A DNA stretch of 64,000 nucleotides from Paragordius varius (Eukaryota; Animalia; Nematomorpha): positions 13,268,001 through 13,332,000 of the forward strand of contig OZ176050.1 in NCBI GenBank assembly GCA_964247055.1, written 5' to 3'. The translations under genes and the position numbers were made by a program. Below, piece by piece: positions 31,271 through 57,227 of the stretch (the first letter of the stretch is position 1; every line of letters begins with the position of its first letter). Below the pieces are notes generated by a model. It was not told where the DNA came from. It saw only the letters and a list, made by a program, of their open reading frames with translations, and ran no database searches.

Positions 31271-32450
31271 TTTAACACTTCGATTCAAATTGGGGTATCT
31301 AAATACCCCAGACTAAATTTAAATTAAAATTTTTAAAAAATTATTGAAGGAAACGGTCCCAATTTAAATTTATGCTTCTATCCTGATAAATATTATATAA
31401 ATATGCCAAAGTATCTTGATAAAATTTTGTTTTGAAAAAAAAGTTCCATCTCAAACTACTTCGACGCCATTTTTATTTTACAAAATTTTTGCAAAATATC
31501 GTCTTCATTTAATTTCAAGGGTAAAACTAAAGCTATATATTTATATAAATTACATCTAACATTGATAGAAATAGAAAAAGCGGTTTATTTTGTATTATTT
31601 TTTAATATTTAAATTTGACACATGTCATGCTGACGAAATTTTTTTCCTTTCGGTTTTAGCTAAAAATAAGTAATATCAAGTATTTTTAAATAAATTTTTT
31701 TATATATTTCGGTTTATTAATGTTATATAAGTGCAAAATTTTGCCGTGGTTTCGATTCCTTCCATACTTTTTAAAGTATTTGATTTTAAACAGGCCTGGG
31801 GTATCCAACTACCCCAATTTGAATCGAAGGACTAAAATGAGTGTGTTGTATCCAAGTGTTAATTTTAGCTTTAAAATTAACACTTGGATACAACACACTC
31901 ATTTTAGTCCTTCGATTCAAATTGGGGTAGTTGGATACCCCAGGCCTGTTTAAAATCAAATACTTTAAAAAGTATGAAAGGAATCGAATCTATGGCAAAA
32001 TATTGCACTTATATAACATTAATAAACCTAAATATATAAAAAAATTTATTAAAAAATATTTGATATTAAATATTTTAAGCCAAAACCGAAAGGTAAAAAT
32101 TTCGTCAACGTGACATGTGTCAAATGGTAAAATTAAAAAATAATACAAAATAAACAGCTTTTTCCATTTCTATCAATGTTGGATGTAATTTATAATAAAA
32201 TTTAGCTTTAGTTCTACCCTTAAAATTAAATGAAGACGATATTTTGCAAAAATTTTGTAAAATAAAAATGGCGTCGAAGTAGTTTGAGATGGAACTTTTT
32301 TTTCAAAACAAAATTTTATCAAAATATTTTGGCATATTTATATAATTTTCATCAGGATAGAAGCATAAATTTAAATTGAGACCGTTTCCTTCAGTAGTTT
32401 TTTAATAGTCTGGGGTATTTAGATACCCCAATTTGAATCGAAGTGTTAAA
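31271..32450. repeat. 1.18-kb foldback palindrome (element A head-to-head)
   Basis: Arms 31763-31867 and 31872-31976 are perfect reverse complements (105 bp) around a 4-nt loop GCTT. The outer 45 bp (31271.. / ..32450) are also perfect; the region between is imperfect. Confidence 0.92.
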
Positions 32451-34942: not shown

Positions 34943-35917
34943 TTATTGTCCATGTAAATTAAGGTAAATAAGGGTAAGCCAATTCATGATTAAAACTAGT
35001 ATCTCCATTTCTAACATCCAATGCACAATAACATAAAATAAATGATAAATTACATAATGGTAATCCATATGACAAATCATATAACTCAATAAAACTCCAT
35101 AAATTTGGATCGAAGAATTTGATCCCACAGCCATACAGTTATAATAATATGGTTGTATAAATTTTGACACTCGACTTTCATGCTTGAAAAAATGTCGGAG
35201 TTTTTGCACATAGCAAAACGCAAATAGCGCAACAAATACCAAGTAAGTATAGAAAGCGTATCTTTGCAAACCTGACAACATTAAAGAAGCAATCCAAAAA
35301 ACGCTTATACGCCCGCTATCTCTGGCGGGCTCAGTTGATTTATCTTCCACGAAAAATATATATGGGGCCGAAACCAGGATGGTGAAAAAAATGGCTAAAA
35401 CAAACATATATTTTGACGTAGAATTCAATCTATACATGCATGGAGACCTGATGCGCAAAATATCATCGATTACAAGGATGTTTGGAAGCACCCATTGATT
35501 CATATAGGCGACTAGACTGGCAAATGTCCAATATGAGCTGAAACCCTTCTTTAAGATCATCAACGTCGAGGGAAACGATTCAAACACAATGATCGCATAG
35601 ATAATTGTGTAGCAAACAAGTAACAAATGTAATATTCTATACCTTGTATGGTATAAAAAACGTTCATTTTTATCATCTCCCTCATCATAGTAGCACGATT
35701 CTGATGTTGTGTTTTTATAACTGGTATAATCGTTATTGTAGGGAAGGCCATATGATGAAAGAATATTTTTGGATTTTCTCACTTGAGAATCGGATGAATG
35801 TATTAGGAATATTTTGACAAAATTACTGGCAATACGTTTCACGGGTTCCGATACAAAGAATATGATGTTTGCAAAAAATGTAATATGGTACAAAAATCTA
35901 GTTAAATTATAATCCAT
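34943..35917 (-). CDS. Intronless 324-aa multi-pass membrane protein, copy 1; putative highly divergent rhodopsin-class GPCR
   Basis: About seven hydrophobic segments. VIDDILRIRSPCMYR has the exact spacing of the class A TM3/ICL2 motif (IDRYxAIxxPxxYR), and the following helix ends in ILVSAPYIF like a TM4. ORF confidence is high; the family call is an inference. Confidence 0.8.
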   Translation of the reverse strand: MDYNLTRFLYHITFFANIIFFVSEPVKRIASNFVKIFLIHSSDSQVRKSKNILSSYGLPYNNDYTSYKNTTSESCYYDEGDDKNERFLYHTRYRILHLLLVCYTIIYAIIVFESFPSTLMILKKGFSSYWTFASLVAYMNQWVLPNILVIDDILRIRSPCMYRLNSTSKYMFVLAIFFTILVSAPYIFFVEDKSTEPARDSGRISVFWIASLMLSGLQRYAFYTYLVFVALFAFCYVQKLRHFFKHESRVSKFIQPYYYNCMAVGSNSSIQIYGVLLSYMICHMDYHYVIYHLFYVIVHWMLEMEILVLIMNWLTLIYLNLHGQ

Positions 35918-36532
35918 AATTGTACTATTCCTTATAGTAGTTAGTTTATAAGAATAATTATCAGTTTATGAAAAATTTTAGAAGAAAGCGTATCACATAG
36001 CATTGTCATCAAAAATTAAATCAATGTTGTTCTTTTTATAAAGTCATCAATAATTAATAATTTTCGTTTATTTTACGAATTTATTGTCAAGTCGCCATTC
36101 CAACATATACACTTTTGTAATTCGTAGCACCCATATAAATCTTATATATAAATATATATATTCAAAGAGGAAAGCTCTATTATTAATAATTCATAGATGT
36201 CTATGGATTCCTTCAATTTAACATTTTCATTACATTAAGTATATTTATAAATATTAAAAATGGAAAGTTATTTCGTTAAATATTTATATGTTAGATGTCG
36301 CATGCAATTTATCCCTTCAACTTGCATTTTTTATATAAATATGCTTGTGACCACGCCACAAGAAATCTCTCTAATTTTAAATTATGGATGTTTTTAAACA
36401 AATTAATTTTTTAAAAAAGTCAGATGGGCTTTCAGGCTTCAATTAAGCCAAAAAATCTCGAGGAATCAAAACTTAAAGACCCAAAACCAGATAATAAAAT
36501 TTACCAACTGTAAATCAATACTCCGAAATCCT

Positions 36533-37630
36533 TAGATTTATACTTCATAGGTTTTACCGGTCTTTTAGTAAAAAATGTAAGTTTTAAAAATTTATTATGT
36601 ATATTATTTAATAAATTGTCCATCCGTTCCAAACATTTTGCCCGTTTCTCAGGTAGTATATGAATGTCGTGCCAAATTTATTTTCTTATGCAAAAATCCA
36701 TTCTTTCAGATAATATCTTACGTCTTTGGAATTATCAAAGTGTTGCTGTATGGTGCCCTACTGATGCAAAATTGTATTAATCAGATGGCTCCAGAGGAGG
36801 AGAGCTCAGCGAATACTGAAATTTTTTATCAATGCGATCTTAAGGTGTCTTTCACCGGTTTTGCTGTGTGAGATGAAGCAGTTTCATATAGCAAAATGAC
36901 TTTGCCCGGTTGTTTTTCGATCAATACATGGTTTTAATTACGCATTTGTTAGCGATTTGTATTACCAATTTCACGGGGCCTCAGCCGCTTGAGTCTCGCC
37001 AGACACAGTGCATGATTTCTTGCCGATTTGACATTGGTGTTGATTGACACACTTGGCAAGGTAATAGTCACGATTTGTCCGCTTTAGTTAACAATCACCC
37101 GTCCCAATTTGGTGCAAAAAGGATATCTTTTCGTGACTTTGAACTATTTTCGATTTGATGTTCATTCAAATGGTGTAGGTACCGAGTTTATTGGTCTTCC
37201 CCATTACTCGTAAACATCTAATAATTGTTTTTTTGTAGCACATGTAATGCTCCTGCCAATTACCATTAAGTTGTTGGGTCATCATTTAATTACCTTTGCA
37301 TTTGATCGGCTTCGTAGTTGTGCGGTCTACCTAAGCGCCCACATTCTTTGGCAAGACATCTAACTTTTGAGATTTTTAACCATGTTTCACATCTGTTAAT
37401 CAAAATATGTTTACCACAGGTTTCTGCCAGCAAACGATAACTTACAGCTGCTTTTTCTTCTAATGGCAATGCGTGCTGCAATTTCTTTTTCCTAGCGTAA
37501 TTGACATAATCACTGAATGATAAAAGTAAAGATACTAGTTAATGATGAACTCAAATTGCAAGTGTGTAAATTAATCGTCTGTGTACTGCTAACGTCTTCT
37601 CTTAGTTAAACCAGTACCTACATATGAATA
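36533..37630 (-). mobile_element. Degenerate mariner copy in unit 1
   Basis: KAAVSYRLLAETCG..RCETW (Mos1-like N-terminal HTH) and C-terminal HILPEKRAKC; many frameshifts. End coordinates are approximate. Confidence 0.82.
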
Positions 37631-37794
37631 GGTAAAAAGCATTGAATCGGTTATATTTTACAAAAATTGAGCCGGATATAAATTATAACGTTTATTAAAC
37701 GGTTATTTTTGAATAGTTAAATTTTTTTAATTAGATTTAGTATTCTATTTCAGATTCGACACAGTATTTTTATTATACCACCTTAAGTTTTAAA

Positions 37795-38400
37795 GATGAA
37801 GAGAAAAGAATAAAAGCTTTTGAAATGTTCTGATGGAAGAAAATACATGGTATAACATGGAAAAACAAAGGGAAAAACATCGATGTTGCAAACAAAATCA
37901 ACACACAAACAACTGTTAAATTTGTTTATTTTGGACATATGATTTGAGGTTATTCTTTGGAAAAGGATATAATGTTAGGAAAACTAAATGGCAAGAGAAT
38001 ATGCTGAAGATGCATTGGTTGAATGTTTCAAATTTTATCACTTTCTAAAAATCCCTGCAAAAACTATCTCTAAAAGCCCATGTTAGAAGCGTACCTTGCA
38101 TTTCTGGCGCCCAGTGCTTGAATCTGCGATGGCGCCCCATCCCCTCCATGCAACCCCTTGCATTTTAAAAATAATCAAATTCAAACCATACTCATAAATG
38201 GGTGATTTTTAATGTATTATTTAAAATAGTAACATTTAAATATTTATTTGGTTATAATCTGGCGCGCCTTCAACTAAGGAGCCTAGTGAATTAAACCCCT
38301 TCCTCCCATTTGTTACGCCACTGCATGATAGAACCGACTGGAGGAAGTTTTGTAAGAAAGCGATAAAGGTATATAATGAAAATCCAACGAAACAAGTTTT
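37795..38400 (+). mobile_element. RTE LINE 3' relic interrupted by a MITE
   Basis: EKRIKAFEMF*WKKI..FVYFGHMI*GYSLEKDIMLGKLNGKR, resuming after 38323 as DRTDWRKF. Confidence 0.75.
38087..38323. mobile_element. hAT-type MITE family C (CAGTGGCGTA ends, GGCGCC motifs)
   Basis: Right end gttacgccactg; flanked by catgttag / catgatag (near 8-bp duplication). The empty site with a single catgatag is at 54093-54100 on the minus strand. Confidence 0.65.
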
Positions 38401-41400
38401 TTGCATTAATATATTTGGTTAGATAAAGGGATGAAGGCAAAAAAAATTTACATTCATCAAAAAAATGCTTGAAATACCTTTATAATATTTTTCTTATAAT
38501 TTTTCTATTTATCGTTTTATTTGAAGTATATTACATATAATCATAATTCTTTTTCCTCAGTTTTAAATATGCGTACTTTATTTTTTTATATCTAAATACA
38601 CCAGACTAAATTTAAGTTAGGATTTTTACAAAACTACTGAAGGAAAAGTCCCAATTTAAATTTATGCTTCTATCCTAATTAAAATTTATAAATATGCCAA
38701 AATATCTAAATAAAATTTTGTTTTGAAAAAAAAGTTCCATGTCAAACTACTTCGACGCCATTTTTATTTTACAATTTGCAAAATATCGTCATTTAATTTT
38801 GAGGGCGAAATTAAAGCTAATTTTTAAATTACATCTAACATTGATAGAACTAGAAAAACAATTTATTTTGTATTTTTTAATTTTACCATTTCACACATGT
38901 CACGTCAACGTTTTTACCTTTAGGTTTGGCTTAAAATAAGTAATATCAAGTATTTTTGAATAAGTTTTTTTATTTTTTTCAATTTGTTAATGTTATAAAT
39001 GTGCATATTTTTGTCATGGTTTCAATATCTTCCATTTTTTTGAATTATTTAATTTTGAACAGGGCTGGGGTATCGAACCCCAATTTGAATCCAAGGACTG
39101 AAATGAATGTGTTGGTATTTGCAACATTTAAATCGAGGTGTTAAATCGCTATTACAACAGACAATAAATGTATCTTATTGTTAAAAATGTTAATAAATAA
39201 TTTTAAAAAGCATTCTGGTTACATTTTACGGACAAAAACTTGAATAATTTGAATTTAATATCAGCTGTTTATTTCAATCTCGTTTTGAATGCTGTCCCTA
39301 TTAAAACTCTAATAGTCTCAAAACTGTAAAATAAGGTTTTAATTGTAAATAAACTACATTTTTAAATGTTAGTTTAAAATTTCAATTATCAAACATTGTT
39401 CTCATATAGCTCTGGAATATAAAACTATCCTAAAAAGTTAACTAGGACGAAAAAGTGAAAACGTATATGTCATGCAGGCTAGATTTTTACTTTCAGGTTT
39501 GTCCATAAAATAAGTGATATCAAGTTTTTTTAAATGATCTTGTTTAACTTCTATGCATCAATGTTATATAAGTGCAAACTTTTGCAATGGTTTTAATTTG
39601 TTCCATTTTTTAAGAAATATTTGATTATAAAAAGGCCCGGGGCTCCCATAGACCCCAATTTGAATTGAGGATTAATATAAAAGTGTTGTACCAAATGTTA
39701 AGATAACCTGTTCATGTTAGACGGGTCCAAAAATATGATAAGACTTCGGAACCCACATTTAAAATTTAAAATTTTACAAAGAGATTGTTTTGTTTAAATA
39801 GGGTATGATTTTAGTGGATACTTTTAGGTAGAGCATTTGCCTTCGGCATAAAACATCTATTTAGCAAAATCTGCGCAAATTTTGCCATTTGATATGGACC
39901 AAATACCACAGCAGTTGTAAATTTCATATTTCTCTCGTAATCAACACCAAAAACTGTAGGAGAAGGATGATACATTTAATTCTTAGAATTACATATTTCA
40001 ACAGGATATTTTTTAAGAGCAAACGTTATGTTAAAATCATTTTCGATGAAAGTAAAATGCTTCATTCCAAAAAATATCATTAATTTATATCACATTCTTT
40101 ATATATTATCAAAAACAGTTTTTCAATACAATGATATAGGAATAAATATATATTCAAAACTTTGTTATTAACATCTATTCTGCCGGAGAAATGAAATAAA
40201 CACTTTTGTGTAAAAATAATCAGCCAAATTTTGAGGGTAAAAAACGTTTTAAATGAAATTGTGCAATTAAATAAAAAAGTCTTTCAAATATTATTTATGC
40301 AGGCCTATTTAGAATGATACCACCAATGTAGTTTACATCCATTTTGGAATTATAAAACTGGTTTCTGGGGTTTTATAATTTGCATATAATTGAATTCATG
40401 AAAATCAAAAGTTATTTTCAAAAACCGCGCCTTATTAAATGACAAATGGTAATTTTTTGCATTTTCTCTTTAATGGACTTTGAAGTCCCATTCACATAGT
40501 TTTAGGATGATGATATTTTCTATTTATAAAATCTTTTATACGCCTAATAACAAATAAAGTCAAGATGACTGTTTTTATTAGGCAAATAATATTTCCATCT
40601 AATAATTTAGCTGAAAAGATTTTCTAGATTCGAGCAATTATGGAAGGATATTTTTTTGATTTTCGTAAATATTGCAATAATTTTTTTGAGTGTGGTGTAG
40701 TCTAGTAGGAGGAAATCTTAAATTTTGCACACTTTATATAAAGGGAAAAGCATTAAGGGCCGATTTATAAGAACCGTTTATTTGCTTTTAAATTTAGTCT
40801 TTCAAAAAGCAAATTTTTAGACTAAATTTCTAAAGAAAAAACAAAATTTAAAACAGGGGCTAGTTAGGGGTCAACAAACTTTAAAAATATTTTAAAGCGT
40901 TTTTATTTGATTTTTTTTATTTTTTATTTTTAACCAAATATTTTATCAAAATGTTATCAATAAATTTTTGAACCGAAACTTTATTTGGAATTTAATTAAA
41001 TAATTATCAATAATTTTCCATGATTTTTGTGATTAATTATTTTTTAGAAAAGTTTTAATTATTATAAAATTAATATTAAGTTTGATTGGTTGAAAAGTGG
41101 TTAAATTTGATCGAAAATATATATGATTATATTTCCGGATATTACCTCACATTGCTGTTTTTTTTCAGATAAAGTATCGCTTAATAGAAAAACTCTCTAG
41201 CTCTTTCTATACATTCATGATATTATTGATAAATGATTGAATAGGTTTCCCAATTAGCTGTAAAATCGTGTTTTAAGTTTTTTCTAAAAACATTTTTGTT
41301 TTTACATATGGCATTTAACTGACGAAGGGGAAAGGAATTGCGCTTTGCGCATTCATAGATTAAATATATGGAATAATAATTAAATTTGAACATTTAAGTA

Positions 41401-41429
41401 ACAAAATTTTTATATAAAAAAAATCAAAT

Positions 41430-42401
41430 TTATTGTCCATGTAAATTAAGGTAAATAAGGGTAAGCCAATTCATGACTAAAACTAGTATCTCCATTTCTA
41501 ACATCCAATGCACAATAACATAAAATAAATGATAAATTAGATAATGGTAATCCATATGACAAATTATATAACTCAATAAAACTCCATAAATTTGGATCGA
41601 AGAATTTGATCCCACAGCCATACAGTTATAATAATATGGTTTTATAAATTTTAAAACTTGACTTTCATGCTTGAAAAAATGTCGGAGTTTTTGCACATAG
41701 CAAAACGCAAATAGCGCAATAAATACCAAGTAGGTATAGAAAGCGTATATTTGCAAACCTGACACCATTAAAGAAGCAATCCAAAAAACGCTTATACGAT
41801 CCTTATTCCTGGGCTCAAGAGATATATCTAGGTCGAAAAAGATATATGGGGCCGAAACCAGGATGGTGAAAAAAATGGCTAAAACAATTATATATTTTGA
41901 CGTAGAATTCAATCTATACATGCATGGAGACCGGATGCGCAAAATATCATCGATAACCAGGATGTTTGGCAGCACCCATTGATTCATATAGGCAGCTAGA
42001 CTAGCAAATGTCCAATATGAGATGAAATCATTCTTTATGATCATCAACGTCGAGGGAAACGATTCAAACACAATGATCGCATAGATAATTGTGTAGCAAA
42101 CAAGTAACAAATGTAATATTTTATACCTTGTATGGTATAAAAAACGTTCATTTTTATCATCTCCCTCATCATAGTAGCACGATTCTGATGTTGTGTTTTG
42201 ATAATTGGTATAATCATTATTGTAGGGAAGGCCATATGATGAAAGAATATTTTTGGATTTTCTCACTTGAGAATCGGATGAATGTATTAGGAATATTTTG
42301 ACAAAATTACGGGCAATACGTTTCACGGGTTCCGATACAAAGAATATGATGTTTGCAAAAAATGTAATATGGTACAAAAAATTAGTTAAATTATAATCCA
42401 T
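41430..42401 (-). CDS. 7TM/GPCR-like membrane protein, copy 2 (323 aa)
   Basis: Intact ORF. Differs from the other copies mainly at IIKNDFISYW and FDLDISLEPRNKDRIS, with an in-frame one-codon deletion. Confidence 0.8.
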   Translation of the reverse strand: MDYNLTNFLYHITFFANIIFFVSEPVKRIARNFVKIFLIHSSDSQVRKSKNILSSYGLPYNNDYTNYQNTTSESCYYDEGDDKNERFLYHTRYKILHLLLVCYTIIYAIIVFESFPSTLMIIKNDFISYWTFASLAAYMNQWVLPNILVIDDILRIRSPCMYRLNSTSKYIIVLAIFFTILVSAPYIFFDLDISLEPRNKDRISVFWIASLMVSGLQIYAFYTYLVFIALFAFCYVQKLRHFFKHESQVLKFIKPYYYNCMAVGSNSSIQIYGVLLSYIICHMDYHYLIYHLFYVIVHWMLEMEILVLVMNWLTLIYLNLHGQ

Positions 42402-43014
42402 ATTTGTACTATTCCTTATAGTAGTTAGTTTATGAGAATAATTATCAGTTCATGAAAAATTTTAGAAGAAAGCGTATCACATAGCATTGTCATCAAAAAT
42501 TAAATCAATGTTGTTCTTTTTATAAAGTCATGTATAATTAATAACTTTCGTTTATTTTACGAATTTATTGTCAAGTCGCCATTCCAACATATACACTTTT
42601 GTAATTCGTAGCACCCATATAAATCTTATATATAAATATATATATTCAAAGAGGAAAGCTCTATTATTAATAATTCATAGATGTCTATGGATTCCTTGAA
42701 TTTAACATATCATTACATTAAGTATATTAATAAATATTAAAAATGGAAAGTTATTTCGTTAAATATTTATATGTTAGATGTCGCATGCAATTTATCCCTT
42801 CAACTTGCATTTTTTATATAAATATGCTTGTGACCACGCCACAAGAAATCTCTCTAATTTTAAATTATGGATGTTTTTAAACAAATTAATTTTTTAAAAA
42901 AGTCAGATGGGCTTTCAGGCTTCAATTAAGCCAAAAAATCTCGAGGAATCAAAACTTAAAGACCCAAAACCAGATAATAAAATTTACCAACTGTAAATCA
43001 ATACTCCGAAATCC

Positions 43015-44527
43015 TTAGATTTATACTTCATAGGTTTTACCGGTCTTTTAGTAAAAAATGTAAGTTTTAAAAATTTATTATGTATATTATTTAATAAATT
43101 GTCCATCCGTTCCAAACATTTTGCCCGTTTCTCAGGTAGTATATGAATGTCGTGCCAAATTTATTTTCTTATACAGAAAACCATTCTTCAGATAATTTCT
43201 TACGTCTTTGGACTTATAGAAGAGTTTCTGCTCTACTGTGCCCCATTGATGCAAAGTTGTATTAGGATGGCGCCGGATGAGGATAGTTCAGTAGATATTG
43301 AAAAATTTCCTATTAAAGCGATCTTAAGATGTCTATCACTAGTTTTGCTGGAGATGAAGCAGTTTCATATAGCAAAATCACTTTGCCCGGGTTATTTTTC
43401 GTAATTAGTTGATAGCGATAGTGTTTATTAACAAATTCACGGGGCCTCAATCGCTTTTATCCCCCAGACACAGATCATGATTTCTTGCCGAAGCGATTTG
43501 GCATTGGTCGGGAATGACTAGGGTTGTGATTTTGACCCCTTTTTCAAAAAAGGGGGTCAGACCTAGGTCATACCATATGTTATTGCCAATAATAAATAAC
43601 TACATACATAAATACTTGATTAAATTACATAAAAAAGGTTTTTACATAAAGTATATAATTTTTTAAAAGTATACTTTCACCAATACTGATAAAATTTATA
43701 AAATTAACTCATGGAATTATACATAAAGACCATAGAAAGTTTTAAATCACAGAAAGATAAGACTAACAATTTGGAATTTATTGAAACCTATTTATGCTTT
43801 AATTATTTTAAACTATGAATGAAATCCGAAAATGTTTATTTTCAACTATGTTAAGAGTTGAGGATGTAGAAATAAATAGACACAGATCATGATTTCTTGC
43901 CGAAGCGATTTGGCATTGTCGGGAATGACACACTTGGCAAGGTAATAGTCACAACTTTTCCCTTTGGATTTACAAATAGAGCCATTTTTCATCACCCGTC
44001 CCAATTTGGTGCAAAAAGGATATCTTTTCGTGACTTTGAACTATTTTCGATTTGATGTTCATTCAAATGGTGTAGGTACCGAGTTTATTGGTCTTCCCCA
44101 TTGCTCGTAAACATCTAATAAATTGTTTTTTTGTAGCACATGTAATGCTCCTGCCAATTACCATTAAGTTGTTGGGTCATCATTTAAATACCTTTGCATT
44201 CGATTGTCTTCGTAGTTGTGCGGTCTACCTGAGCGCCCACATTCTTTAGCAAGATTACATAACTTTTGAGATTTTAAACCATGTTTTACATCTGTTAATT
44301 GATAGAGTATGTCCACAGGTTTCTGCCAGCAAACTATAACTTACAGCTGCTTTTTCTTCTAATGGCAATGCGTGCTGCAATTTATTTCAGGCGCAATTGA
44401 CATAATCACTGAATGATAAAAGTAAAGATACTAGTTTATGATGAACTCAAATTGTAAGTGTGTAAATTAATCGTCTGTGTACTGCTGACGTCTCTTAGTT
44501 AAACCAGTAAAAACTAAATGCACCTAG
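43015..44527 (-). mobile_element. Degenerate mariner copy in unit 2, containing a 359-bp insertion
   Basis: Collinear with the unit 1 and unit 3 mariner relics apart from 43519-43929. Confidence 0.8.
43519..43877. mobile_element. 359-bp insertion starting TAGGGTTG, flanked by a 52-53-bp direct duplication
   Basis: agacacagatcatgatttcttgccgaagcgatttggcattg(g)tcgggaatgac at 43466-43518 and 43878-43929. Hairpin tgacccc...ggggtca at 43533-43559. Confidence 0.65.
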
Positions 44528-45548
44528 TAAAAAGCGTTGAACCGGTGATATTTGACAAAAAAATTGAGCCGGATATAAATTATAAAAGCCGTTTATTAAA
44601 CGGTTATTTTTAATAGTTAATTTTTTTATCAGATTTAGTATTCTATTTCAGATTTATTGACACAGTAATTTCATTATACCACCTTAAGTTTTATAGATGA
44701 AGAGAAAAGAATAAAAGCTTTTGAAATGTTCTGATGGAAGAAAATACATGTTATAACATGGAAGGACAAAATGAAAAACATCGATGGTGCAAACAAAATC
44801 AACACACAAACAACTGTTAAATTTGGATGTTTTTTATATTAAAAAAAAATTGTAATAAATATATACTCAGAATAAAGTAGACTTTTCGCGATTCGGTCGA
44901 AATCGTCTGCCTTTTGGATATGAGAAGAACACACCAAAACCATCAAATACATTTTATATACTTTTACTTTAGGGTTATGGATGATTCCTTATTGGTAAAG
45001 AGTGCAATCCAAAGAGGCTTATTACCCTGATGAAGTTTTTCGATACTCGGAAATGAATTCTTTTTTAATAAAGTTGAGTCACCCGTAAAACTTCAGTTGT
45101 TTAGGGGAACAGTATCTATGCCACAGGAAAATCAAAGATAAGTACCATTTTCTACTAAATTCTATTTTTTATAATCTTTTAACCATATATTCTTATGAAT
45201 TTTATTTGGGTTATCGTCTGCTCGGTTAAATCATTATTGTTTTTTGTCGTTAACGTTTCATTTAATTAAAACTATTGTCGCATATCAACAACTCAATTAT
45301 TATCAAACCTCTGTTTCAAAAATCAAACAATAATGTTCTTTCCAAAGCGCAGGTTATGTACGGTATTTTTTTTTAATTCCTTTTTTTCCTAATAAGCAAA
45401 TTTAATAACACTAACTTACAGTAAAAAATTAAATCACAATAATATTTTATATACATACATATATATACAAACATTTGCAATCATAAAAAGTTTTATTAGA
45501 AAAGTTTTAAAAGGTTTTTTCCAAATACTTATATAGCTCACGGTACTC

Positions 45549-45884
45549 CAAACAAAATGGACAGACAAAGTTTCAAACACCACCATTCTAAATAAAATAA
45601 ACCCAGAAATGTCACTCCTTGGCAGCTTAACACGGCAAAAACTCTCCTTCTTCGGGCACATCATGAGATCCAGCTCACTCGAAAAATCACTGATGCTGGG
45701 GAAAGTGAGTGGTGCCCGAAAAAGAGGGAGAAGACGAACTCGTTGGAGGGATAACATCCTTAAAGAAACCAACCTATCCTTATCCGACCTAAACACCAAA
45801 ACCGGAAATCGAAATGAATGGAGAAGCTATATTTTCAATGTTGCAATTAGTCGGAATCGACTTTAGCAAACAACAACAACAACA
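45549..45884 (+). mobile_element. Young 5'-truncated RTE/BovB-like LINE insertion with a (CAA)n tail
   Basis: Open frame QKLSFFGHIMRSSSLEKSLMLGKVSGARKRGRRRTRWRDNI..NRNEWR..VAISRNRL* followed by caacaacaacaacaac. Flanked by ACTC on both sides. The empty paralogous site is at ~59310-59325. Confidence 0.92.
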
Positions 45885-47998: not shown

Positions 47999-48973
47999 TT
48001 ATGGTCCATGTAAATCAAGGTAAATAAGGGTAAGCCAATTCATGACTAAAACTAGTATCTCCATTTCTAACATCCGATGCACAATAACATAAAATAAATG
48101 ATAAATTACATAATGATAATCCATATGACAAATTATATAACTCAATAAAACTCCATAAATTTGGATTGAAGAATTTGATCCGACAGCCATACAGTTATAA
48201 TAATATGGTTGTATAAATTTTGACACTTGATTTTCATGCTTGAAAAATTGTCGGAGTTTTTGCACATAGCAAAACGCAAATAGCGCAATAAATACCAAGT
48301 AAGTATAGAAAGCGTATCTTTGCAAACCTGACAACATTAAAGAAGCAATCCAAAAAACGCTTATACGCCCGCTATCTCTGGCGGGCTCAGTTGATTTATC
48401 TTCCACGAAAAATATATATGGGGCCGATACCAGGATGGTGAAAAAAATGGCTAAAATAATTATTAACTTTGACGTAGAATTCAATCTATACATGCATGGT
48501 GACCTGATGCGCAAAATATCATCGATTACAAGGATGTTTGGAAGCACCCATTGATTCATATAGGCGACTAGACTGGCAAATGTCCAATATGAGCTGAAAC
48601 CCTCTTTTAAGATCATCAACGTCGAGGGAAACGATTCAAACACAATGATCGCATAGATAATTGTGTAGCAAACAAGTAACACGCGTAATATTTTATACCT
48701 TGTATGGTATAAAAAACGTTCATTTTTATCATCTCCCTCATCATAGTAGCACGATTCTGATGTTGTGTTTTTATAAATGGTATAATCGTTATTGTAGGGA
48801 AGGCCATATGATGAAAGAATATTTTTGGATTTTCTCACTTGAGAATCGGATGAATGTATTAGGAATATTTTGACAAAATTACGTACAATACATTTCACGG
48901 GTTCCGATACAAAGAATATGATGTTTGCAAAAAATGTAATATGGTACAAAAAATTAGTTAAATTATAATCCAT
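47999..48973 (-). CDS. 7TM/GPCR-like membrane protein, copy 3 (324 aa)
   Basis: Intact ORF, collinear with copy 1; private changes include W300R near the last helix and C-terminal DLHGP. Confidence 0.8.
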   Translation of the reverse strand: MDYNLTNFLYHITFFANIIFFVSEPVKCIVRNFVKIFLIHSSDSQVRKSKNILSSYGLPYNNDYTIYKNTTSESCYYDEGDDKNERFLYHTRYKILRVLLVCYTIIYAIIVFESFPSTLMILKEGFSSYWTFASLVAYMNQWVLPNILVIDDILRIRSPCMYRLNSTSKLIIILAIFFTILVSAPYIFFVEDKSTEPARDSGRISVFWIASLMLSGLQRYAFYTYLVFIALFAFCYVQKLRQFFKHENQVSKFIQPYYYNCMAVGSNSSIQIYGVLLSYIICHMDYHYVIYHLFYVIVHRMLEMEILVLVMNWLTLIYLDLHGP

Positions 48974-49594
48974 AATTGTACTATTCCTTATAGTAGTTAG
49001 TTTATAAGAATAATTATCAGTTTATGAAAAATTTTAGAAGAAAGCGTATCACATAGCATTGTCATCAAAAATTAAATCAATGTTGTTCTTTTTATAAAGT
49101 CATCAATAATTAATAATTTTCGTTTATTTTACAAATTTATTGTCAAGTCGCCATTCCAACATATACACTTTTGTAATTCGTAGCACCCATATAAATCTTA
49201 TATATAAATATATATATTCAAAGAGGAAAGCTCTATTATTAATAATTCATAGATGTCTATGGATTCCTTGAATTTAACATATCATTACATTAAGTATATT
49301 AATAAATATTAAAAATGGAAACTTATTTCGTTAAATATTTATGTGTTAGATGTCGCATGCAATTTATCCCTTTAACTTGCATTTTTTATATAAAAATGCT
49401 TGTGACCACACCACAAGAAATCTATCTAAATTAAATTTTGGATGTTTTTAAACAAAATACTAAATTAATTTTTTAAAAAGGTTAGATGGGCTTTAAGGCT
49501 TCAATTTAGCCAAAACATCTGGAGGGATCAAAACTTAAAGACCCAAAACCAGATAATAAAATTTATCAACTGTAAATCAATTCACCGAAATCCT

Positions 49595-50670
49595 TAGATA
49601 TATATTAGTAAAAAATGTAAGTTTTAAAAATTTATTATGTATATTATTTAATAAATTGTCCATCCGTTCCAAACATTTTGCCCGTTTCTCGGGTAGTATA
49701 TGAATGTCGTGCCAAATTTATTTTCTTATGCAGAAAACCATTCTTAGATAATATCTTACGTCTTTGGAATTATCAAAGTGTTGCTGTAGGGTGCCCCACT
49801 GATGCAAAATTGTGTTAATCAGATGGAGCCAGATGAGGAGAGCTCAGTGAATACTGAAATTTGTTTTTATCAAAACGATTAGGTGTCTTTCACCGGTTTT
49901 GCTGTGTGAGATGAAGCAGTTTCATATAGCAAAATGACTTTGCCCGGTTGTTTTTCGATCAATACATGGTTTTAATTACGCATTTGTTAGCGATAGTGTT
50001 GTATTAACAATTTCACGGGGCCTCAGCCGCTTTAGTCTCGCCAGACACAGTGCATGATTTCTTGCCGATTTGACATTGGTGTTGATTGACACACTTGGCA
50101 AGGTAATAGTCACGATTTGTCCGCTTTAGTTAACAATCACCCGTCCCAATTTGGTGCAAAAAGGATATCTTTTCGTGACTTTGAACTATTTTCGATTTGA
50201 TGTTCATTCAAATGGTGTAGGTACCGAGTTTATTGGTCTTCCCCATTGCTCGTAAACATCTAATAATTGTTTTTTTGTAGCACATGTAATGCTCCTGCCA
50301 ATTACCATTAAGTTGTTGGGTCATCATTTAATTACCTTTGCATTTGATCGGCTTCGTAGTTGTGCGGTCTACCTGAGCGCCCACATTCTTTCGCAAGATA
50401 TCATAACTTTAGAGATTTTAAACCATGTTTCACATCTGTTAATCAAAATATGTTCACCACAGGTTTCTGCCAGCAAACGATAACTTACAGCTGCTTTTTC
50501 TTCTAATGGCAATGCGTGCTGCAATTTCTTTTTCAGGCGCAATTGACATAATTAATGAATGATAAAAGTAAAGATACTAGTTATGAACTCAAATTATAAG
50601 TGTGTAAATTAATCGTCTGTGTACTGCTAACGTCTTCTCTTAGTTAAACCAGTACCTACATATAAATAGG
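49595..50670 (-). mobile_element. Degenerate mariner copy in unit 3
   Basis: Near-identical to the unit 1 relic. Confidence 0.8.
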
Positions 50671-50829
50671 TAAAAAGCATTGAATCGGTTATATTTTACA
50701 AAAATTGAGCCGGATATAAATTATAACGTTTATTAAACGGTTATTTTTGAATTAAATTTTTTTAAATTAGATTTAGTATTCTATTTCAGATTCGACACAT
50801 TATTTTTATTATACCACCTTAAGTTTTAA

Positions 50830-51420
50830 AGTTGAAGAGAAAAGAATAAAAGCTTTTGAAATGTTCTGATGGAAGAAAATACATGGTATAACATGGAAGG
50901 ACAAAGGGAAAAATATCGATGTTGCAAACAAAATCAACACACAAACAACTGTTAAATTTGTTTATTTTGGACATATGATTTGAGGTTATTCTTTGGAAAA
51001 GGATATAATGTTAGGAAAACTAAATGGCAAGAGAATATGCTGAAGATGCATTGGCTGAATGTTTGAAATTTTATCACTTTCTATAAATCCCTGCAAAAAC
51101 TATCTCTAAAAGCCCATGTTAGAAGCGTACCTTGCATTTCTGGCGCCCAGTGCTTGAATCTGCGATGGCGCCCCATCCCCTCCATGCAACCCCTTGCATT
51201 TTAAAAAATAATCAAATTCAAACAGTACTCATAAATGGGTGATTTTTAATGTATTATTTAAAATAGTAACATTTAAATATTTATTTGGTTATAATCTGGC
51301 GCCCTTCAACTAAGGAGCCTGGTGAATTAAACCCCTCCCTTCCATTTGTTACGCCACTGCATGATAGAACCGACTGGAGGAAGTTTTGTAAGAAAGTGAT
51401 AAAGGTATATAATGAAAATC
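50830..51420 (+). mobile_element. RTE 3' relic with MITE C insertion (51123-51359)
   Basis: Paralogous to 37795-38400, with the same insertion point. Confidence 0.72.
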
Positions 51421-52099
51421 CAACGAAACAAGTTTTTTGCATTAATATATTTGGTTAGATAAAGGGATGAAGGCAAAAAAAATTTACATTCATTCAAAAA
51501 ATTCTCGAAATACCTTTATAATATTTTTCTTATAATTTTTATATTTATCATTTTATTTGTAGTATATTACATATAATCATAATTCTTATTCCTCAGTTTT
51601 AAATATGCGTACTTTATTTTTTAAAATCTAAATACACCAGACTAAATTTAAGTTAGGATTTTTACAAAACTACTGAAGGAAACAGTCCCAATTTAAATTT
51701 ATGCTTCTATCCTAATTAAAATTTATAAATATGCCAAAATATCTAAATAAAATTTTGTTATGAAAAAAAAGATCCATGTCAAACTACTTCGACGCCATTT
51801 TTATTTTACAATTTGCAAAATATCGTCATTTAATTTTGAGGGCGAATTAAAGCTAATTTTTAAATTACATCTAACATTGATAGAACTAGAAAAACAATTT
51901 ATTTTGTATTATTTTTTAATTTTACCATTTCACACATGTCACGTCAACTTTTTTACCTTTAGGTTTGGCTTAAAATAAGTTATATAAAGTATTTTTAAAT
52001 AAGTTTTTTTATTTTCAATTTGTTAATGTTATAAATGTGCATATTTTTGTCATGGTTTCAACATCTTCCATTTTTTTGAATTATTTAATTTTGGACAGG

Positions 52100-53250
52100 G
52101 CTTTTCTCATATGGACCAATTACCACAGCAGTTATAAATTTCATATTTCTCTCGTAAACCAAAAGCACTATGAGAATCCTGTTATATTTATCTATCATTT
52201 ACATATTTCATCAGATTTTTTAAGAGCAAATGTTTAAATCATTTTTGGTCAAAGTTAAATTTATTCAAAAAAATATCATTAAATCACATTCTTTATTTAT
52301 TATAATAAACAGTTTTTCAATACAATGATATATAGGAATAAATATCTACTCAAAATTTTGTTATGAACATCTATTCTGCCGGAGAAGTAGAATAAACACC
52401 TTTTTATGTAAAAATAATTCTTTAAGCCAAAGAGGGAAAAACCGTTTAAAATAAAATTATGCCTTTTTATAACATATGAAAAAAGTCTTTCAAATAATAT
52501 AGTGTCTATGCAAGCCTATCCGGTATTATAGTAATGTTAATGACGTCTTCCATTTTGAAATTATAAAACTGGTTTTTAGGGTTTTATACTTTGAATATAA
52601 AATTCATAAAAATCAAAAGTTATTGTGAAAAACACCGCCTTAAATGACAAATGATAATTTTTTACATTTTTTCTTTAATGGACTTTGAGGTGTCATATTT
52701 AAACGTAGTCTTAAAATGATTATAGTTTCTATACAAAATCTTTTATACGCCTAGTAACAAATAAAATCAAAATGACTGTTTATATTAGGCAAATAATATT
52801 TTCTTTCCACCTAATAATTTAGCTGAAAAGATTTTCAAGATTCGGGAAATTATGAAAAATACTGGAAAAATATTTTTGCTCTTATGTAATATATTTCAAC
52901 AATATTTTAAGTCTGTCAGTGTTTGAGGATATGCTTAATGTTGCACATTCTATACTAAGGGTAAAACTCCAGGAAATTTGTATATACTGTTTATATTAAT
53001 CCTAGAAGAAATACTCAAAAAAATTAATAAAATTATCATAACTTTCTAAAATGGAGCAAAGAATTTTTTATGAGTTAATATCCTGTGGAAAAGCAATATT
53101 AATACAGTGAGCTAACACAGGGTCTAATTAGGATACAACTCTCTTTATAAAAAATTTATCTTAAGATTAAAGCTTAATAAGCATGTATAGTCCTTTAATC
53201 TTTAATTTAATTTTATTTTTTTATTTTTAAACTTCGTTTTAGGGGTAAAA
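52100..53250. repeat. Truncated unit-1-type downstream flank lacking the 7TM ORF
   Basis: Matches ~33380-34500 (gaggtgtcatatttaaacgtag, aagggtaaaactccaggaaatt), variants that are absent from units 2-4. Confidence 0.7.
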
Positions 53251-53294
53251 TCTTTAATTTAAAAAGTGTAAAACTCAATTTTGGAATTTAATTA

Positions 53295-53564
53295 TAGTAA
53301 AACTAAAATATACGGACAAATGTAAAAATATAAAGACAAAATTTTTTTCAACCATAGCTTTTGAATCTTGATTTATTAAAATTAATATAATTGTTAATTT
53401 GAAAGTATGGAATAGAGATGTTTATTGGTAATTAAATATTTTATCATTGTAAATAAATCATTCAATATGGGAAAGATTTAGATTCAAAAATGTATGGTTG
53501 TATTTTGAAAAAAATATTTGTCTTATATTTTTACGTTTTGTCCGTATAATTTCAGTTTTACCTG
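53295..53564. mobile_element. MITE family B copy
   Basis: Same inverted arms as 15780-16053. Confidence 0.65.
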
Positions 53565-53851
53565 TAATAATTATTACTAACTATATATAAAAATATCAGG
53601 AACGCAAATTAGACTCAGGATGCCAAGTCATGTAAATACTAGCATTTTTAAATATAATATTAGGAATCTAAGTATACGCCAGGTTAAAACAATTTTTTTG
53701 GGTAGTATTTATATCTTGCAAGGGGGCCCACAATTTATAGTTCGCCAGTTAATTAACCGCCACGTGCTCCCACACTGCATGTTTTAAAACTTTCTGGACT
53801 CTAAATTAAACCATTAATTTATATATCATACACGTAACAAGACACGTAAAT

Positions 53852-53924
53852 GCCCGGCTAGCTCAGTCGGTAGAGCATGAGGCTCTTAACCTCAGGGTCG
53901 TGGGTTCGAGCCCCACGTCGGGCG
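53852..53924 (+). tRNA. tRNA-Lys: tRNA-Lys(CTT)
   Basis: GCCCGGCTAGCTCAGTCGGTAGAGCATGAGGCTCTTAACCTCAGGGTCGTGGGTTCGAGCCCCACGTCGGGCG, 73 nt, fully paired cloverleaf, A and B boxes, followed by a T-run Pol III terminator. Confidence 0.97.
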
Positions 53925-54064
53925 CATTTTTTTATTTTTTGTACTTCATGTATCTATGGATTTATTTATAGACGCTATTAATTATCGACTTCATTAAATC
54001 TAACCAAATATTTAAATAATGTGGAAAACTTGGTTAATTGGGAGCTTGTAGTCGATTTATTGAT

Positions 54065-54370
54065 TAAATAGAAATACTTCCTCCAGTCGGTTCTATCATG
54101 GCGGAGCTAGTTTTTGCAGAGATTTTTAGAAAGTCAGAAAATTCAACCAATACACCTTTGGCCTATTCCTCTCTTGCCATTTACTTTTCCTAACATTATA
54201 CCCTTTTCCAAAGAATAACCTCAAATTATTGGTTGTTTCGATATTTTTGCCACGCGTTGTTAGTGTGTTGATTTATGTTTGCATTATCGTTTAACTTTGT
54301 CCTCCCATGTTATACCAACTATCCTTAATTAAAATATTTCAAAAGCGTTTATTCTTTTCTCCACATCTTT
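54065..54370 (-). mobile_element. RTE 3' relic, diverged paralog without the MITE
   Basis: Reverse complement reads ctgcaaaaactagctccgccatgatagaaccgactggagg contiguously. Confidence 0.7.
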
Positions 54371-54539
54371 TTTAAAGTTAAGGTGGTATAATGAAATTAC
54401 TGTAAATAAATCTGAAATAGAATACTAAATCTGGCAAAAAAATTAACTATTTTAAAATATAGTAACCGTTTAATAACTGATTTTATAATTTATATCCGGC
54501 TCAATTTTTGTAATTTATAACCGATTCAACGCTTTTTAC

Positions 54540-55643
54540 TAGGTGTATTTAGTTTTTACTGGTTTAACTAAGAGACTTCAGCAGTACACAGACGATTAAT
54601 TTACACACTTACAATTTGAGTTCATCTTAAACTAGTATCTTTACTTTTATCATTCAGTGATTATGTCAATTGCCCCTGAAATAACAGCACGCATTGTCAT
54701 TAGAAGAAAAAGCAGCTGTAAGTTATAGTTTGCTAGCAGAAACCTGTGGACACACTCTATCAATTAACAGATGTAAAGCATGGTTAATCTCAAAAGTTAT
54801 GTAATCTTGCTAAAGAATGTGGGCGCTCACGTAGACCGCACAACTACGAAGACGATCGAATGCAAAGGTAATTAAATGATGACCCAACAACTCAATGGTA
54901 ATTGGCAGGAGCATTACATGTACCACAAAAAAACAATTGATTGATGTTTACGAGCAATGGGGAAGACCAATAAACTCGGTACCTACACCATTTGAATGAA
55001 CATCAAATCGAAAATAGTTCAAAGTCACGAAAAGACATCTTTTTTGCACCAAATTGGGAGGGGTGATGAAAAATGGCTCTTTTTGAAAATCCAAAAAATT
55101 GTGACTATTACCTTGCAAAGCCGGTCAATCCACACCAATGCCAAATCGCTTCGGCAAGAAATCATGCACTGTGTCTGGTGGGACCAAAGCGGTTGACGCC
55201 CCGTGAAATCGTTAATACAAAACTATCGCTGAATACCTAATCAAAACCATGTATTGATCGAAAAACAACCGGGCAAAGTGATTTTGCTATATGAAACTGC
55301 TTCATCTCACACAGCAAAACCGGTGAAAGACACCTTTTCGCTTTGATAAAAAATTTCAGTATTCGATGAGCTCTCCCCATCTGTCGCTATCCTAATACAA
55401 TTTTGCATCAATGGGGCACAGTAGAGCAACAACTCTTCTATAACTCCAAAGACGTAAGAAATTATCTGAAAGAATGGTTGTCTGCATAAGAAAATAAATT
55501 TGGCACGACATTCATATACTACCTGAGAAACGGGCAAAATGTTTGGAACGGATGGACAATTTATTAAATAATATACATAATAAATTTTTAAAACTTACAT
55601 TTTTTACTAAAAGACCGGTAAAACCTATGAAGTATAAATCTAA
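54540..55643 (+). mobile_element. Degenerate mariner copy in unit 4
   Basis: FLHQIGRGDEKWLF and HCVWWDQSG motifs (ORF 54996-55196). Confidence 0.85.
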
Positions 55644-56252
55644 GGATTTCGGAGTATTGATTTACAGTTGGTAAATTTTATTATCTGGTTTTGGGTCTTT
55701 AAGTTTTGATTCCTCGAGATTTTTTGGCTTAATTGAAGCCTGAAAGCCCATCTGACTTTTTTAAAAAATTAATTTGTTTAAAAACATCCATAATTTAAAA
55801 TTAGAGAGATTTCTTGTGGCGTGGTCACAAGCATATTTATATAAAAAATGCAAGTTGAAGGGATAAATTGCATGCGACATCTAACATATAAATATTTAAC
55901 GACTTTCCATTATTAATATTTATAAATATACTTAATGTAATGAAAATGTTAAATTGAAGGAATCCATAGACATCTATGAATTATTAATAATAGAGCTTTC
56001 CTCTTTGAATATATATATTTATATATAAGATTTATATGGGTGCTACGAATTACAAAAGTGTATATGTTGGAATGGCGACTTGACAATAAATTCGTAAAAT
56101 AAACGAAAATTATTAATTATTGATGACTTTATAAAAAGAACAACATTGATTTAATTTTTGATGACAATGCTATGTGATACGCTTTCTTCTAAAATTTTTC
56201 ATAAACTGATAATTATTCTTATAAACTAACTACTATAAGGAATAGTACAATT

Positions 56253-57227
56253 ATGGATTATGATTTAACTAGATTTTTGTACCATATTACATTTTTTGCA
56301 AACATCATATTCTTTGTATCGGAACCCGTGAAACGTATTGCCCGTAATTTTGTCAAAATATTCCTAATACATTCATCCGATTCTCAAGTGAGAAAATCCA
56401 AAAATATTCTTTCATCATATGGCCTTCCCTACAATAATGATTATACCAATTATCAAAACACAACATCAGAATCGTGCTACTATGATGAGGGAGATGATAA
56501 AAATGAACGTTTTTTATACCATACAAGGTATAAAATATTACATTTGTTACTTGTTTGTTACACAATTATCTATGCGATCATTGTGTTTGAATCGTTTCCC
56601 TCGACGTTGATGATCTTAAAGAAGGGTTTCGGCTCATATTGGACATTTGCCAGTCTAGTCGCCTATATGAATCAATGGGTGCTTCCAAACATCCTTGTAA
56701 TCGATGATATTTTGCGCATCAGGTCTCCATGCATGTATAGATTGAATTCTACGTCAAAGTATATAATTATTTTAGCCATTTTTTTCACCATCCTGGTATC
56801 GGCCCCATATATATTTTTCGTGGAAGATAAATCAACTGTACCCACCAGGGATAGCGGGCGTATAAGCGTTTTTTGGATTGCATCTTTAATGGTGTCAGGT
56901 TTGCAAAGATACGCTTTCTATACTTACTTGGTATTTATTGCGCTATTTGCGTTTTGCTATGTGCAAAAACTCCGACATTTTTTCAAGCATGAAAGTCAAG
57001 TTTTAAAATTTATAAAACCATATTATTATAACTGTATGGCTGTGGGATCAAATTCTTCGATACAAATTTATGGAGTTTTATTGAGTTATATAATTTGTCA
57101 TATGGATTACCATTATATGATTTATCATTTATTTTATGTTATTGTGCATTGGATGTTAGAAATGGAGATACTAGTTTTAATCATGAATTGGCTTACCCTT
57201 ATTTACCTTAATTTACATGGACAATAA
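56253..57227 (+). CDS. 7TM/GPCR-like membrane protein, copy 4 (324 aa), inverted
   Basis: Intact ORF carrying a mosaic of residues diagnostic for copies 1/3 and copy 2. Confidence 0.8.
   Translation: MDYDLTRFLYHITFFANIIFFVSEPVKRIARNFVKIFLIHSSDSQVRKSKNILSSYGLPYNNDYTNYQNTTSESCYYDEGDDKNERFLYHTRYKILHLLLVCYTIIYAIIVFESFPSTLMILKKGFGSYWTFASLVAYMNQWVLPNILVIDDILRIRSPCMYRLNSTSKYIIILAIFFTILVSAPYIFFVEDKSTVPTRDSGRISVFWIASLMVSGLQRYAFYTYLVFIALFAFCYVQKLRHFFKHESQVLKFIKPYYYNCMAVGSNSSIQIYGVLLSYIICHMDYHYMIYHLFYVIVHWMLEMEILVLIMNWLTLIYLNLHGQ

Follow-up and report, generated by a model that had tools for sequence, protein, structure and literature searches.

What kind of protein is encoded by the long open reading frames (ORFs) that recur in a repeat array within the 64,000-nt stretch of Paragordius varius contig OZ176050.1 analyzed here (the window; 28.6% GC), and does it belong to any known family of membrane receptors? 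The whole window holds only 13 ORFs of at least 110 amino acids (aa), and four of these are copies of one gene family, a fifth member of which lies outside it. The five ORFs are most likely a young family of single-exon genes, duplicated in tandem and in inverted orientation. Based on a short stretch of similarity and a predicted topology, we consider it probable, with moderate confidence, that they represent a degenerate seven-transmembrane (7TM) offshoot of the rhodopsin clan (class A; Pfam clan GPCR_A) among the G protein-coupled receptors (GPCRs). Membership in class A itself is not established: the scores against family profiles and the residues Arg3.50, the cysteine pair, CWxP, and NPxxY fail to place the family there, whereas the number of helices, their topology, and the signature of the second intracellular loop (ICL2) agree with it. 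The copies and the array that carries them are as follows.

34943-35917, minus strand: copy 1, an intact ORF of 324 aa
41430-42401, minus strand: copy 2, an ORF of 323 aa that has lost one codon in frame and has diverged the most
47999-48973, minus strand: copy 3, an intact ORF of 324 aa
56253-57227, plus strand: copy 4, an intact ORF of 324 aa, head-to-head with copy 3
G000:C1:13333858-13334790 (L005:1501-2436), plus strand: copy 5, an intact ORF of 311 aa, just past the window end
32615-64000, unstranded: array of ~6.5-kb mosaic units, the first three in direct orientation and the following ones inverted; it runs past the window end to copy 5

The initial annotation of this locus described four intact ORFs with one in-frame codon deletion and no stop codons, and the window copies are exactly that; their proteins are 93–94% identical to that of copy 4. 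At this GC content, an open frame of 324 codons would arise by chance with a probability of ~1e-12. A genome-wide copy count, which had been proposed as a check together with a prediction of membrane topology, was carried out as a six-frame search of the whole 110.6-Mb assembly and gave a total of exactly five copies, and a profile search of the genome at E ≤ 10 returned no copy beyond these. Copy 5 carries two in-frame deletions, of 21 nt and 18 nt. We rejected the reading of these missing segments as micro-introns, as they do not have GT...AG ends. A 102-nt in-frame GT...AG segment in the region coding for the predicted first intracellular loop (ICL1) is likewise unsupported as an intron, both deletions there being multiples of three.

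Are these ORFs maintained by selection, or could they be non-functional relics of a once-coding ORF that is carried in a young, transposon-rich segmental repeat and has stayed open only through youth? Divergence is low (pairwise dS = 0.05–0.12 by the Nei–Gojobori method), pairwise dN/dS ranges from 0.23 to 0.68, and a relaxed omega of ~0.5, the mosaic nature of the units with their transposon insertions, and flanks that between some copies match in places as closely as the ORF does (95.6% identity across 4.2 kb for copies 1 and 3) are all compatible with relics. However, the count of events per codon column, 52 non-synonymous against 28 synonymous where ~4:1 is expected under neutrality, reveals a deficit of non-synonymous change (omega ~0.48, binomial p = 0.0017), and ~80 substitution events in an AT-rich frame have produced no stop codon. 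Moreover, the coding sequence (CDS) contains three indels only (3, 21, and 18 nt), all multiples of 3, whereas the 200 nt of non-coding DNA 3' of the stop codon hold many indels of other lengths and the flanks of the units are generally indel-rich. A five-way alignment of the loci shows that a block from about −570 to the stop codon is the best-kept part of the unit: pairwise divergence reaches a minimum of 1–3% between −127 and +272, is 8–16% directly downstream of the block, and rises to 20–40% further out. In all five copies, conservation is thus strongest in the proximal upstream region and at the 5' end of the CDS, and ICL2 is invariant. Because dN/dS, the event counts, the in-frame indels, and the conserved block all point the same way, the earlier inference that the ORF is under selection holds: moderate purifying selection acts on the ORFs, and the duplications are young. 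We consider it highly unlikely that they are relics.

The conserved block continues upstream of the coding sequence, and the two non-coding elements that adjoin the ORF are listed here for copy 4.

55683-56252, plus strand: upstream block of ~570 nt, conserved in all five copies, with TATAAA-like boxes kept
57225-57232, plus strand: stop codon TAA overlapping an AATAAA hexamer that resembles a poly(A) signal (CAATAAAT), kept in four of the five copies, with indel-rich DNA downstream

We presume that the upstream block comprises the promoter and 5' untranslated region. The 300 nt that precede the ATG (55953-56252 in copy 4) do not differ between copies 1 and 4 and show 97% identity over the five copies. 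They are less diverged than the CDS, which suggests either that the promoter is conserved or that a conversion tract formed recently over −127 to +272. The TATAAA-like boxes and the AATAAA hexamer are weak evidence in DNA so rich in A and T.

The proteins are predicted to have the membrane topology of a GPCR. Kyte–Doolittle hydropathy identifies seven hydrophobic segments (residues 8-26, 93-115, 129-150, 169-189, 204-237, 262-283, and 289-320). The odd-numbered loops, which would be cytoplasmic if the N-terminus were outside, hold 18 lysine and arginine residues as compared with 6 in the even-numbered loops and the N-terminus, and because of this positive-inside balance we predict an outside N-terminus and an inside C-terminus (N-out/C-in), the GPCR orientation. 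The proposed topology check therefore yields seven helices in the arrangement expected of class A, with the N-terminus outside and the C-terminus in the cytoplasm, albeit by prediction. Long helices in two AlphaFold2 models, both of low predicted local distance difference test (pLDDT) score, coincide with the hydropathy segments. Only 4 residues follow the last helix, which leaves neither a helix 8 nor a C-terminal tail.

The end of the third transmembrane helix (TM3) and the adjoining ICL2 carry the segment DDILRIRSPCMYR, which is present and invariant in all copies and which the initial annotation mapped onto the class A pattern DRYxAIxxPxxYR with DRY replaced by DDI. Three computations, described below, support this mapping in one and the same register, each of them weak and below family thresholds. 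Residues I156, P159, Y162, R163, and T167 align with the consensus SiDRY.AI.yP.kYk...T of the class A GPCRs encoded in the same genome, and a downstream SAPY aligns with the proline of TM4 in that consensus; the core pattern retained from TM3 through ICL2 to TM4 is D-x-x-x-x-I-x-x-P-x-x-Y-[KR]-x-x-x-T. At the DRY site all five copies have D151-D152-I153, and Arg3.50 is missing. Other class A hallmarks had been reported as unrecognizable, namely the cysteine pair, CWxP, and NPxxY, and a residue survey of the copies agrees. Cysteines occur only at positions 75, 102, 160, 235, 261, and 282, with none at the start of TM3 or in the second extracellular loop (ECL2); residues 262–324 contain no proline at all, and CWxP is absent; and TM7 carries N312-W-L-T-L-I-Y318 (NWLTLIY) instead of NPxxY. 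A D2.50-type acidic residue at the expected spacing, W4.50, and P5.50 are not present either.

The initial annotation also called the family unrecognized, and this stands at the level of sequence. At E ≤ 10, the four full-length proteins matched no Pfam family, a word search of 5.8 billion proteins with the whole protein and with region 88–324 found no relative, and a comparison with the sequences of the PDB, using the profile and the best fragment, found no match; 1.84 billion representatives, nematode proteins included, gave 0 matches at E ≤ 0.001 when searched exhaustively with a HMMER profile. This is less remarkable in view of the GPCRs of the same genome. L056 (G000:C2:11052713-11054077), a GPCR of 499 aa that is positive for the Pfam family 7tm_1, is also without relatives among the 5.8 billion proteins of the word search, and orphan status is therefore not special in this genome; evidently, the protein databases either do not cover the lineage or hold nothing close enough to it.

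What similarity there is appears with fragments and profiles, is limited to residues ~133–192 (the TM3 end, DDILRIRSPCMYR, and TM4), and always has the DRY/ICL2 register and involves models of the GPCR_A clan. In a scan of about 15 fragments against 24,736 Pfam models, the family 7TM_GPCR_Srsx (PF10320) was matched by five of the six fragments over TM3-ICL2-TM4, was the sole family for four of them, and was the only recurring model. The best values came from copy 4 (E = 0.0012 and 18.7 bits for residues 120–200; E = 0.0019 for residues 128–216), followed by copy 1 (E = 0.08) and copy 2 (E = 0.14, behind DUF6106 with E = 0.005); the fragment of copy 3 had no Srsx match. The Srsx register fits the independently predicted topology in that it falls where the third helix ends on its cytoplasmic side. 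The family locus is not listed in a genome scan with PF10328, and the matches of the genome to the Srx model are ordinary 7tm_1 genes and not the five-copy family.

The class A GPCRs of the same genome provide the second and third signals. An hhalign comparison of the five-copy alignment with 27 7tm_1 ORFs (P = 0.014) placed VIDDILRIRSPCMYRLNST...SAPYIFF on SiDRY.AI.yP.kYk...T...iP..f; a score as high arose once in 130 full shuffles and five times in 130 block shuffles, and the reversed query gave nothing. A HMMER comparison of the family profile with 48 GPCR ORFs ranked L034, L035, and L040 as the top three, again in the DRY/ICL2 register (IDRVFAIKAPYTYRNVMT...TTPYGF), with IDD-ILRIRSPCMYR aligned on motifs of the type IDR-VFAIKAPYTYR and APY on the (T/A)PY of TM4, and 150 full shuffles reached the top score once, 150 block shuffles five times. 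We regard the combined homology evidence, with an empirical p of ~0.01–0.04, as suggestive. When the family was aligned by hhalign with two subfamilies of these GPCRs, L034/L035/L058/L060 and the "(N/T)FY" group described below, only the ICL2 stretch aligned (P = 0.022 and 0.054, respectively), and we do not consider the extended and global alignments to these subfamilies trustworthy. Two likenesses noticed by eye, one between the N-terminal helix ITFFANIIF and TM7 of the (N/T)FY subfamily (ITFYLNVLF) and the other an E-x6-N-[FW]-x6-N match in TM7, were discarded for want of score support (global hhalign P = 0.15).

Neighbors in a protein language model are a separate kind of evidence from sequence matches, and we treat them as a lead. 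The best of them (0.93–0.95) are nematode hypothetical proteins of 335–352 aa and clusters of the Srg, Srv, Srx, and Sru families, and for the core (residues 88–324) all named neighbors belong to clan GPCR_A; with this tool, a third of shuffled proteins also obtain ten matches to the same clan. These neighbors, together with the topology, bear on the question of whether the family could belong to the insect gustatory/odorant receptor-like 7TM ion channels (7TMIC; gustatory receptor-like, GRL). Proteins of the 7TMIC superfamily do not have GPCR motifs and end right after the seventh helix, a description that suits seven helices with 4 residues after the last of them and no GPCR micro-switches, and proteins resembling gustatory receptors are notoriously undetectable by sequence. 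Nevertheless, the positive-inside balance of 18 to 6 favors an outside N-terminus, the opposite of the 7TMIC topology, and no match to the Pfam families 7tm_6, 7tm_7, or Trehalose_recp was found, fragments included. Neither gustatory nor odorant receptors are found among the language-model neighbors, whose named core members are of the GPCR_A clan, and the one signal in the sequence is an ICL2 motif of class A. A 7TMIC assignment is accordingly extremely unlikely in our opinion.

Several observations weigh against a rhodopsin-clan origin, and they have to be set beside the evidence above. All class A micro-switches are absent except for D3.49 and the proline and tyrosine of ICL2. The hydrophobicity of the first helix (residues 8-26) is weak, with a peak of 1.4, and the predicted ICL1 is unusual in its length of 66 residues, of which 13 are deleted in copy 5. 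AlphaFold2, run on alignments of the five sequences, gave a pLDDT of 37.7 for the full length and 39.9 for the core, and fold matches to models with pLDDT below 40 would be meaningless. The absence of a Pfam family for the full-length proteins counts here as well, as does the number of fragments that were tried before the Srsx match was obtained, the scores of which (12–18.7 bits) are below the gathering cut-off of 24.1. The hhalign probability is only 2–5%, and the language-model recognition value of 2265 is below the mark of 2300, with shared features mostly <170. Finally, the three homology signals share one stretch of ~60 residues and are therefore not independent.

These same points could be accommodated by an orphan membrane protein of multi-pass type with no relation to GPCRs, such as a lineage-specific channel subunit, a transporter-like protein, or a structural protein, in which DxxxxIxxPxxY[KR] arose by chance in a sequence rich in I, F, Y, L, and N. 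In its favor are the lack of a full-length family match anywhere, similarity over no more than ~60 residues with an empirical p of ~0.01–0.04, the loss of nearly all class A hallmarks, the long first loop, the missing C-terminal tail, the lack of a confident AlphaFold bundle, and the same-clan language-model matches of shuffled proteins. Chance is less easily reconciled with the recurrence of Srsx, alone among 24,736 models and in five of six fragments, in the register expected from the topology, with best own-genome matches that are GPCRs aligned in the DRY/ICL2 register, or with a helix count, helix spacing, and positive-inside balance that fit a GPCR. We consider an unrelated protein somewhat unlikely and continue to favor a degenerate offshoot of the rhodopsin clan.

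The GPCRs of the same genome offer the closest comparison for such an offshoot. The 7tm_1 matches in the genome number well above one hundred, and many of them are complete single-exon ORFs of 350–790 aa, and single long ORFs are the rule among its class A GPCRs. Arg3.50 is kept in 22 of 27 class A ORFs; the other five have DTF, DHY, DIF, CQM, or SQY at this site. A Pfam-positive, single-exon subfamily (L019-L030) has (N/T)FY(I/L)(Y/N) in place of NPxxY and includes several members without Arg3.50, and L034 and L035 (G000:C2:11052713-11054077 and C3:7665661-7667031) have an ICL1 of ~110 residues. Examples of the two subfamilies are listed below.

G000:C6:10049675-10051547: class A GPCR of the (N/T)FY subfamily
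C4:244177-246475: class A GPCR of the (N/T)FY subfamily
C5:7436346-7438788: class A GPCR of the (N/T)FY subfamily
C2:11052713-11054077 (L056): GPCR of the small subfamily with an insertion of ~110 residues in ICL1
C3:7665661-7667031 (L057): GPCR of the small subfamily with an insertion of ~110 residues in ICL1
C5:1843135-1843851 (L058): GPCR of the small subfamily with an insertion of ~110 residues in ICL1

Because recognized class A GPCRs of this genome show loss of Arg3.50, loss of NPxxY, and a long ICL1, the oddities of the five-copy family lie on a continuum with them, and its DDI, its missing NPxxY, and its long ICL1 can be read from these alignments as the extreme points of trends seen in those receptors. 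The family shares with L034/L035 and L040 (7tm_1, PF00001) D3.49, the motif I-x-x-P-x-x-Y-[KR]-x-x-x-T, and a TM4 that ends in (A/T)PY; with the class A GPCRs of the genome more generally, seven predicted helices in the N-out/C-in orientation, a single exon, and tandem amplification; with L034/L035, a long ICL1; and with some members, the loss of Arg3.50 and NPxxY. It differs from class A in that it is below every threshold, has DDI and NWLTLIY, and does not have the D2.50-type residue, the cysteine pair, W4.50, P5.50, CWxP, helix 8, or the C-terminal tail, and at 324 aa it is shorter than the GPCR ORFs of the genome (350–790 aa). We also observed two further tandem arrays of 7tm_1-type ORFs in the genome, both of them receptor clusters amplified locally: one at C9:4654575-4715960, with several matches to model positions 1-127 spaced 13–17 kb apart, and one at C4:883388-939603, with three near-identical ORFs of 415 aa.

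Outside this genome, the nearest language-model neighbors are the nematode serpentine chemoreceptors (Srsx and Srg/Srv/Srx/Sru), which are similar in length (~290–350 aa) and, like the family described here, show class A motifs that have degenerated, short tails, and recent duplicates arranged in tandem clusters. The nematode families differ in that they number tens to hundreds of genes compared with five, and the best Srsx score is 18.7 bits as compared with the 24.1 required. Fast-evolving worms carry lineage-restricted orphan 7TM families. Surveys of planarian and schistosome GPCRs reportedly describe PROF1- and Srf-type families that are restricted to a phylum or species, often intronless, expanding in tandem, and missed by standard models; the likeness of the present family to these families of a different phylum, the flatworms, is one of concept and implies no relationship in sequence.

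Variation among the five copies is unevenly distributed along the protein. Two segments illustrate it.

56703-56756, plus strand: predicted ICL2 of copy 4 (aa 151-168, DDILRIRSPCMYRLNSTS), identical in protein sequence in all five copies and the center of the GPCR-matching stretch
41796-41834, minus strand: predicted ECL2 hot spot of copy 2, with ~13 substitutions and a 3-nt deletion in ~40 nt of a gene that is otherwise ~95% identical

All 18 residues of the predicted ICL2 are invariant in five of five copies. In contrast, the predicted outer loops are enriched in variable residues (15 of 39 positions vs 32 of 285 elsewhere, p = 6e-5), an excess that stems from copy 2 and loses significance when that copy is left out; copy 2 has further changes in the predicted first extracellular loop (ECL1). 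Its ECL2 hot spot could represent retuning of the ligand side or, alternatively, a conversion tract from an unseen donor.

If the family is indeed a degenerate offshoot of the rhodopsin clan, we posit that it descends from the rhodopsin-like receptor stock of a fast-evolving animal lineage and that the five genes encode a seven-helix plasma-membrane protein with its N-terminus outside and its C-terminus inside. The outer half of the bundle, together with ECL1 and ECL2, would sense a ligand, a suggestion based on these loops being the only places where one paralogue diverged sharply, and the signal may then reach a conserved partner inside the cell by way of the invariant ICL2. Given that Arg3.50 and NPxxY are missing, classical activation of a G protein is doubtful. 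The analysis demonstrates the ORFs, the selection acting on them, their number, the motif, and a weak homology that falls in the correct register, whereas the fold, surface location, ligand binding, and signaling of the family are inferred. A chemosensory or host-sensing role, which the initial annotation proposed together with non-canonical activation, is conceivable by analogy with other 7TM families that are tandemly amplified and fast-evolving. We are cautious about a bolder proposal, which we hold to be distinctly unlikely, namely that these genes constitute a new 7TM family, restricted to a worm lineage (probably Nematomorpha), that has kept the class A docking surface of ICL2, has lost Arg3.50, CWxP, NPxxY, helix 8, and the C-terminal tail, signals by non-G-protein means, and is having one paralogue retuned at ECL1 and ECL2 to a new ligand. 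Examples of non-G-protein function would be a ligand-binding partner or decoy, constitutive coupling to a scaffold via ICL2, or channel-like behavior.

The units that carry the genes also carry passengers, of which the following were found.

38589-39115, plus strand: dispersed repeat of ~525 bp, with ~85% identity to very many genomic copies
45434-45799, minus strand: 121-aa ORF of a high-copy element, with at least 150 scored matches of up to 94% identity and no Pfam family
54996-55196, plus strand: remnant of a mariner Transposase_1, with a weak match (E = 0.039, 14.3 bits)

The initial annotation had described mariner and RTE passengers full of indels. Transposable-element passengers are real and the flanks are rich in indels, but the mariner signal is weak and an RTE element was not detected: in 20 ORF pieces, Pfam gave no reverse transcriptase signal and one weak mariner match only. 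The DNA of 54996-55196 is repeated at ~60900-61200, 37094-37356, and 50136-50417, and a genome-wide mariner scan listed no match inside the units. The dispersed repeat looks like a non-autonomous element of the kind of a miniature inverted-repeat transposable element (MITE) or short interspersed nuclear element (SINE); it also occurs, at lengths of ~525–550 bp, at 30365-30913, 31296-31851, and 31888-32405, and a genome-wide first look gave 5276 candidates, its copies sometimes lying in tandem or inverted pairs. Many copies of the 121-aa ORF have a single in-frame TGA; a fragment lies at ~59317-59427, and further copies are L062 and L063. Elsewhere in the window, the mariner scan placed a Transposase_1 remnant at ~16463-16648, outside the units, and two long ORFs rich in C2H2 zinc fingers (461 and 1178 aa) precede the array on the plus strand at 7734-9119 and 9913-13449.

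It is reasonable to regard the family as an annotation lead of modest interest rather than as a new kind of system, and its wider significance is modest, given that there are five young copies only and that orphan 7TM families are known in fast-evolving worms. If our explanation is true, the family shows how far a rhodopsin-type receptor can drift under selection, with DDI for DRY, without NPxxY, CWxP, or helix 8, and with an ICL1 of 66 residues, and some of this genome's receptor repertoire will escape gene finders and standard family models. It would then also provide a candidate family of sensory or host-sensing receptors for a very poorly annotated parasite lineage.

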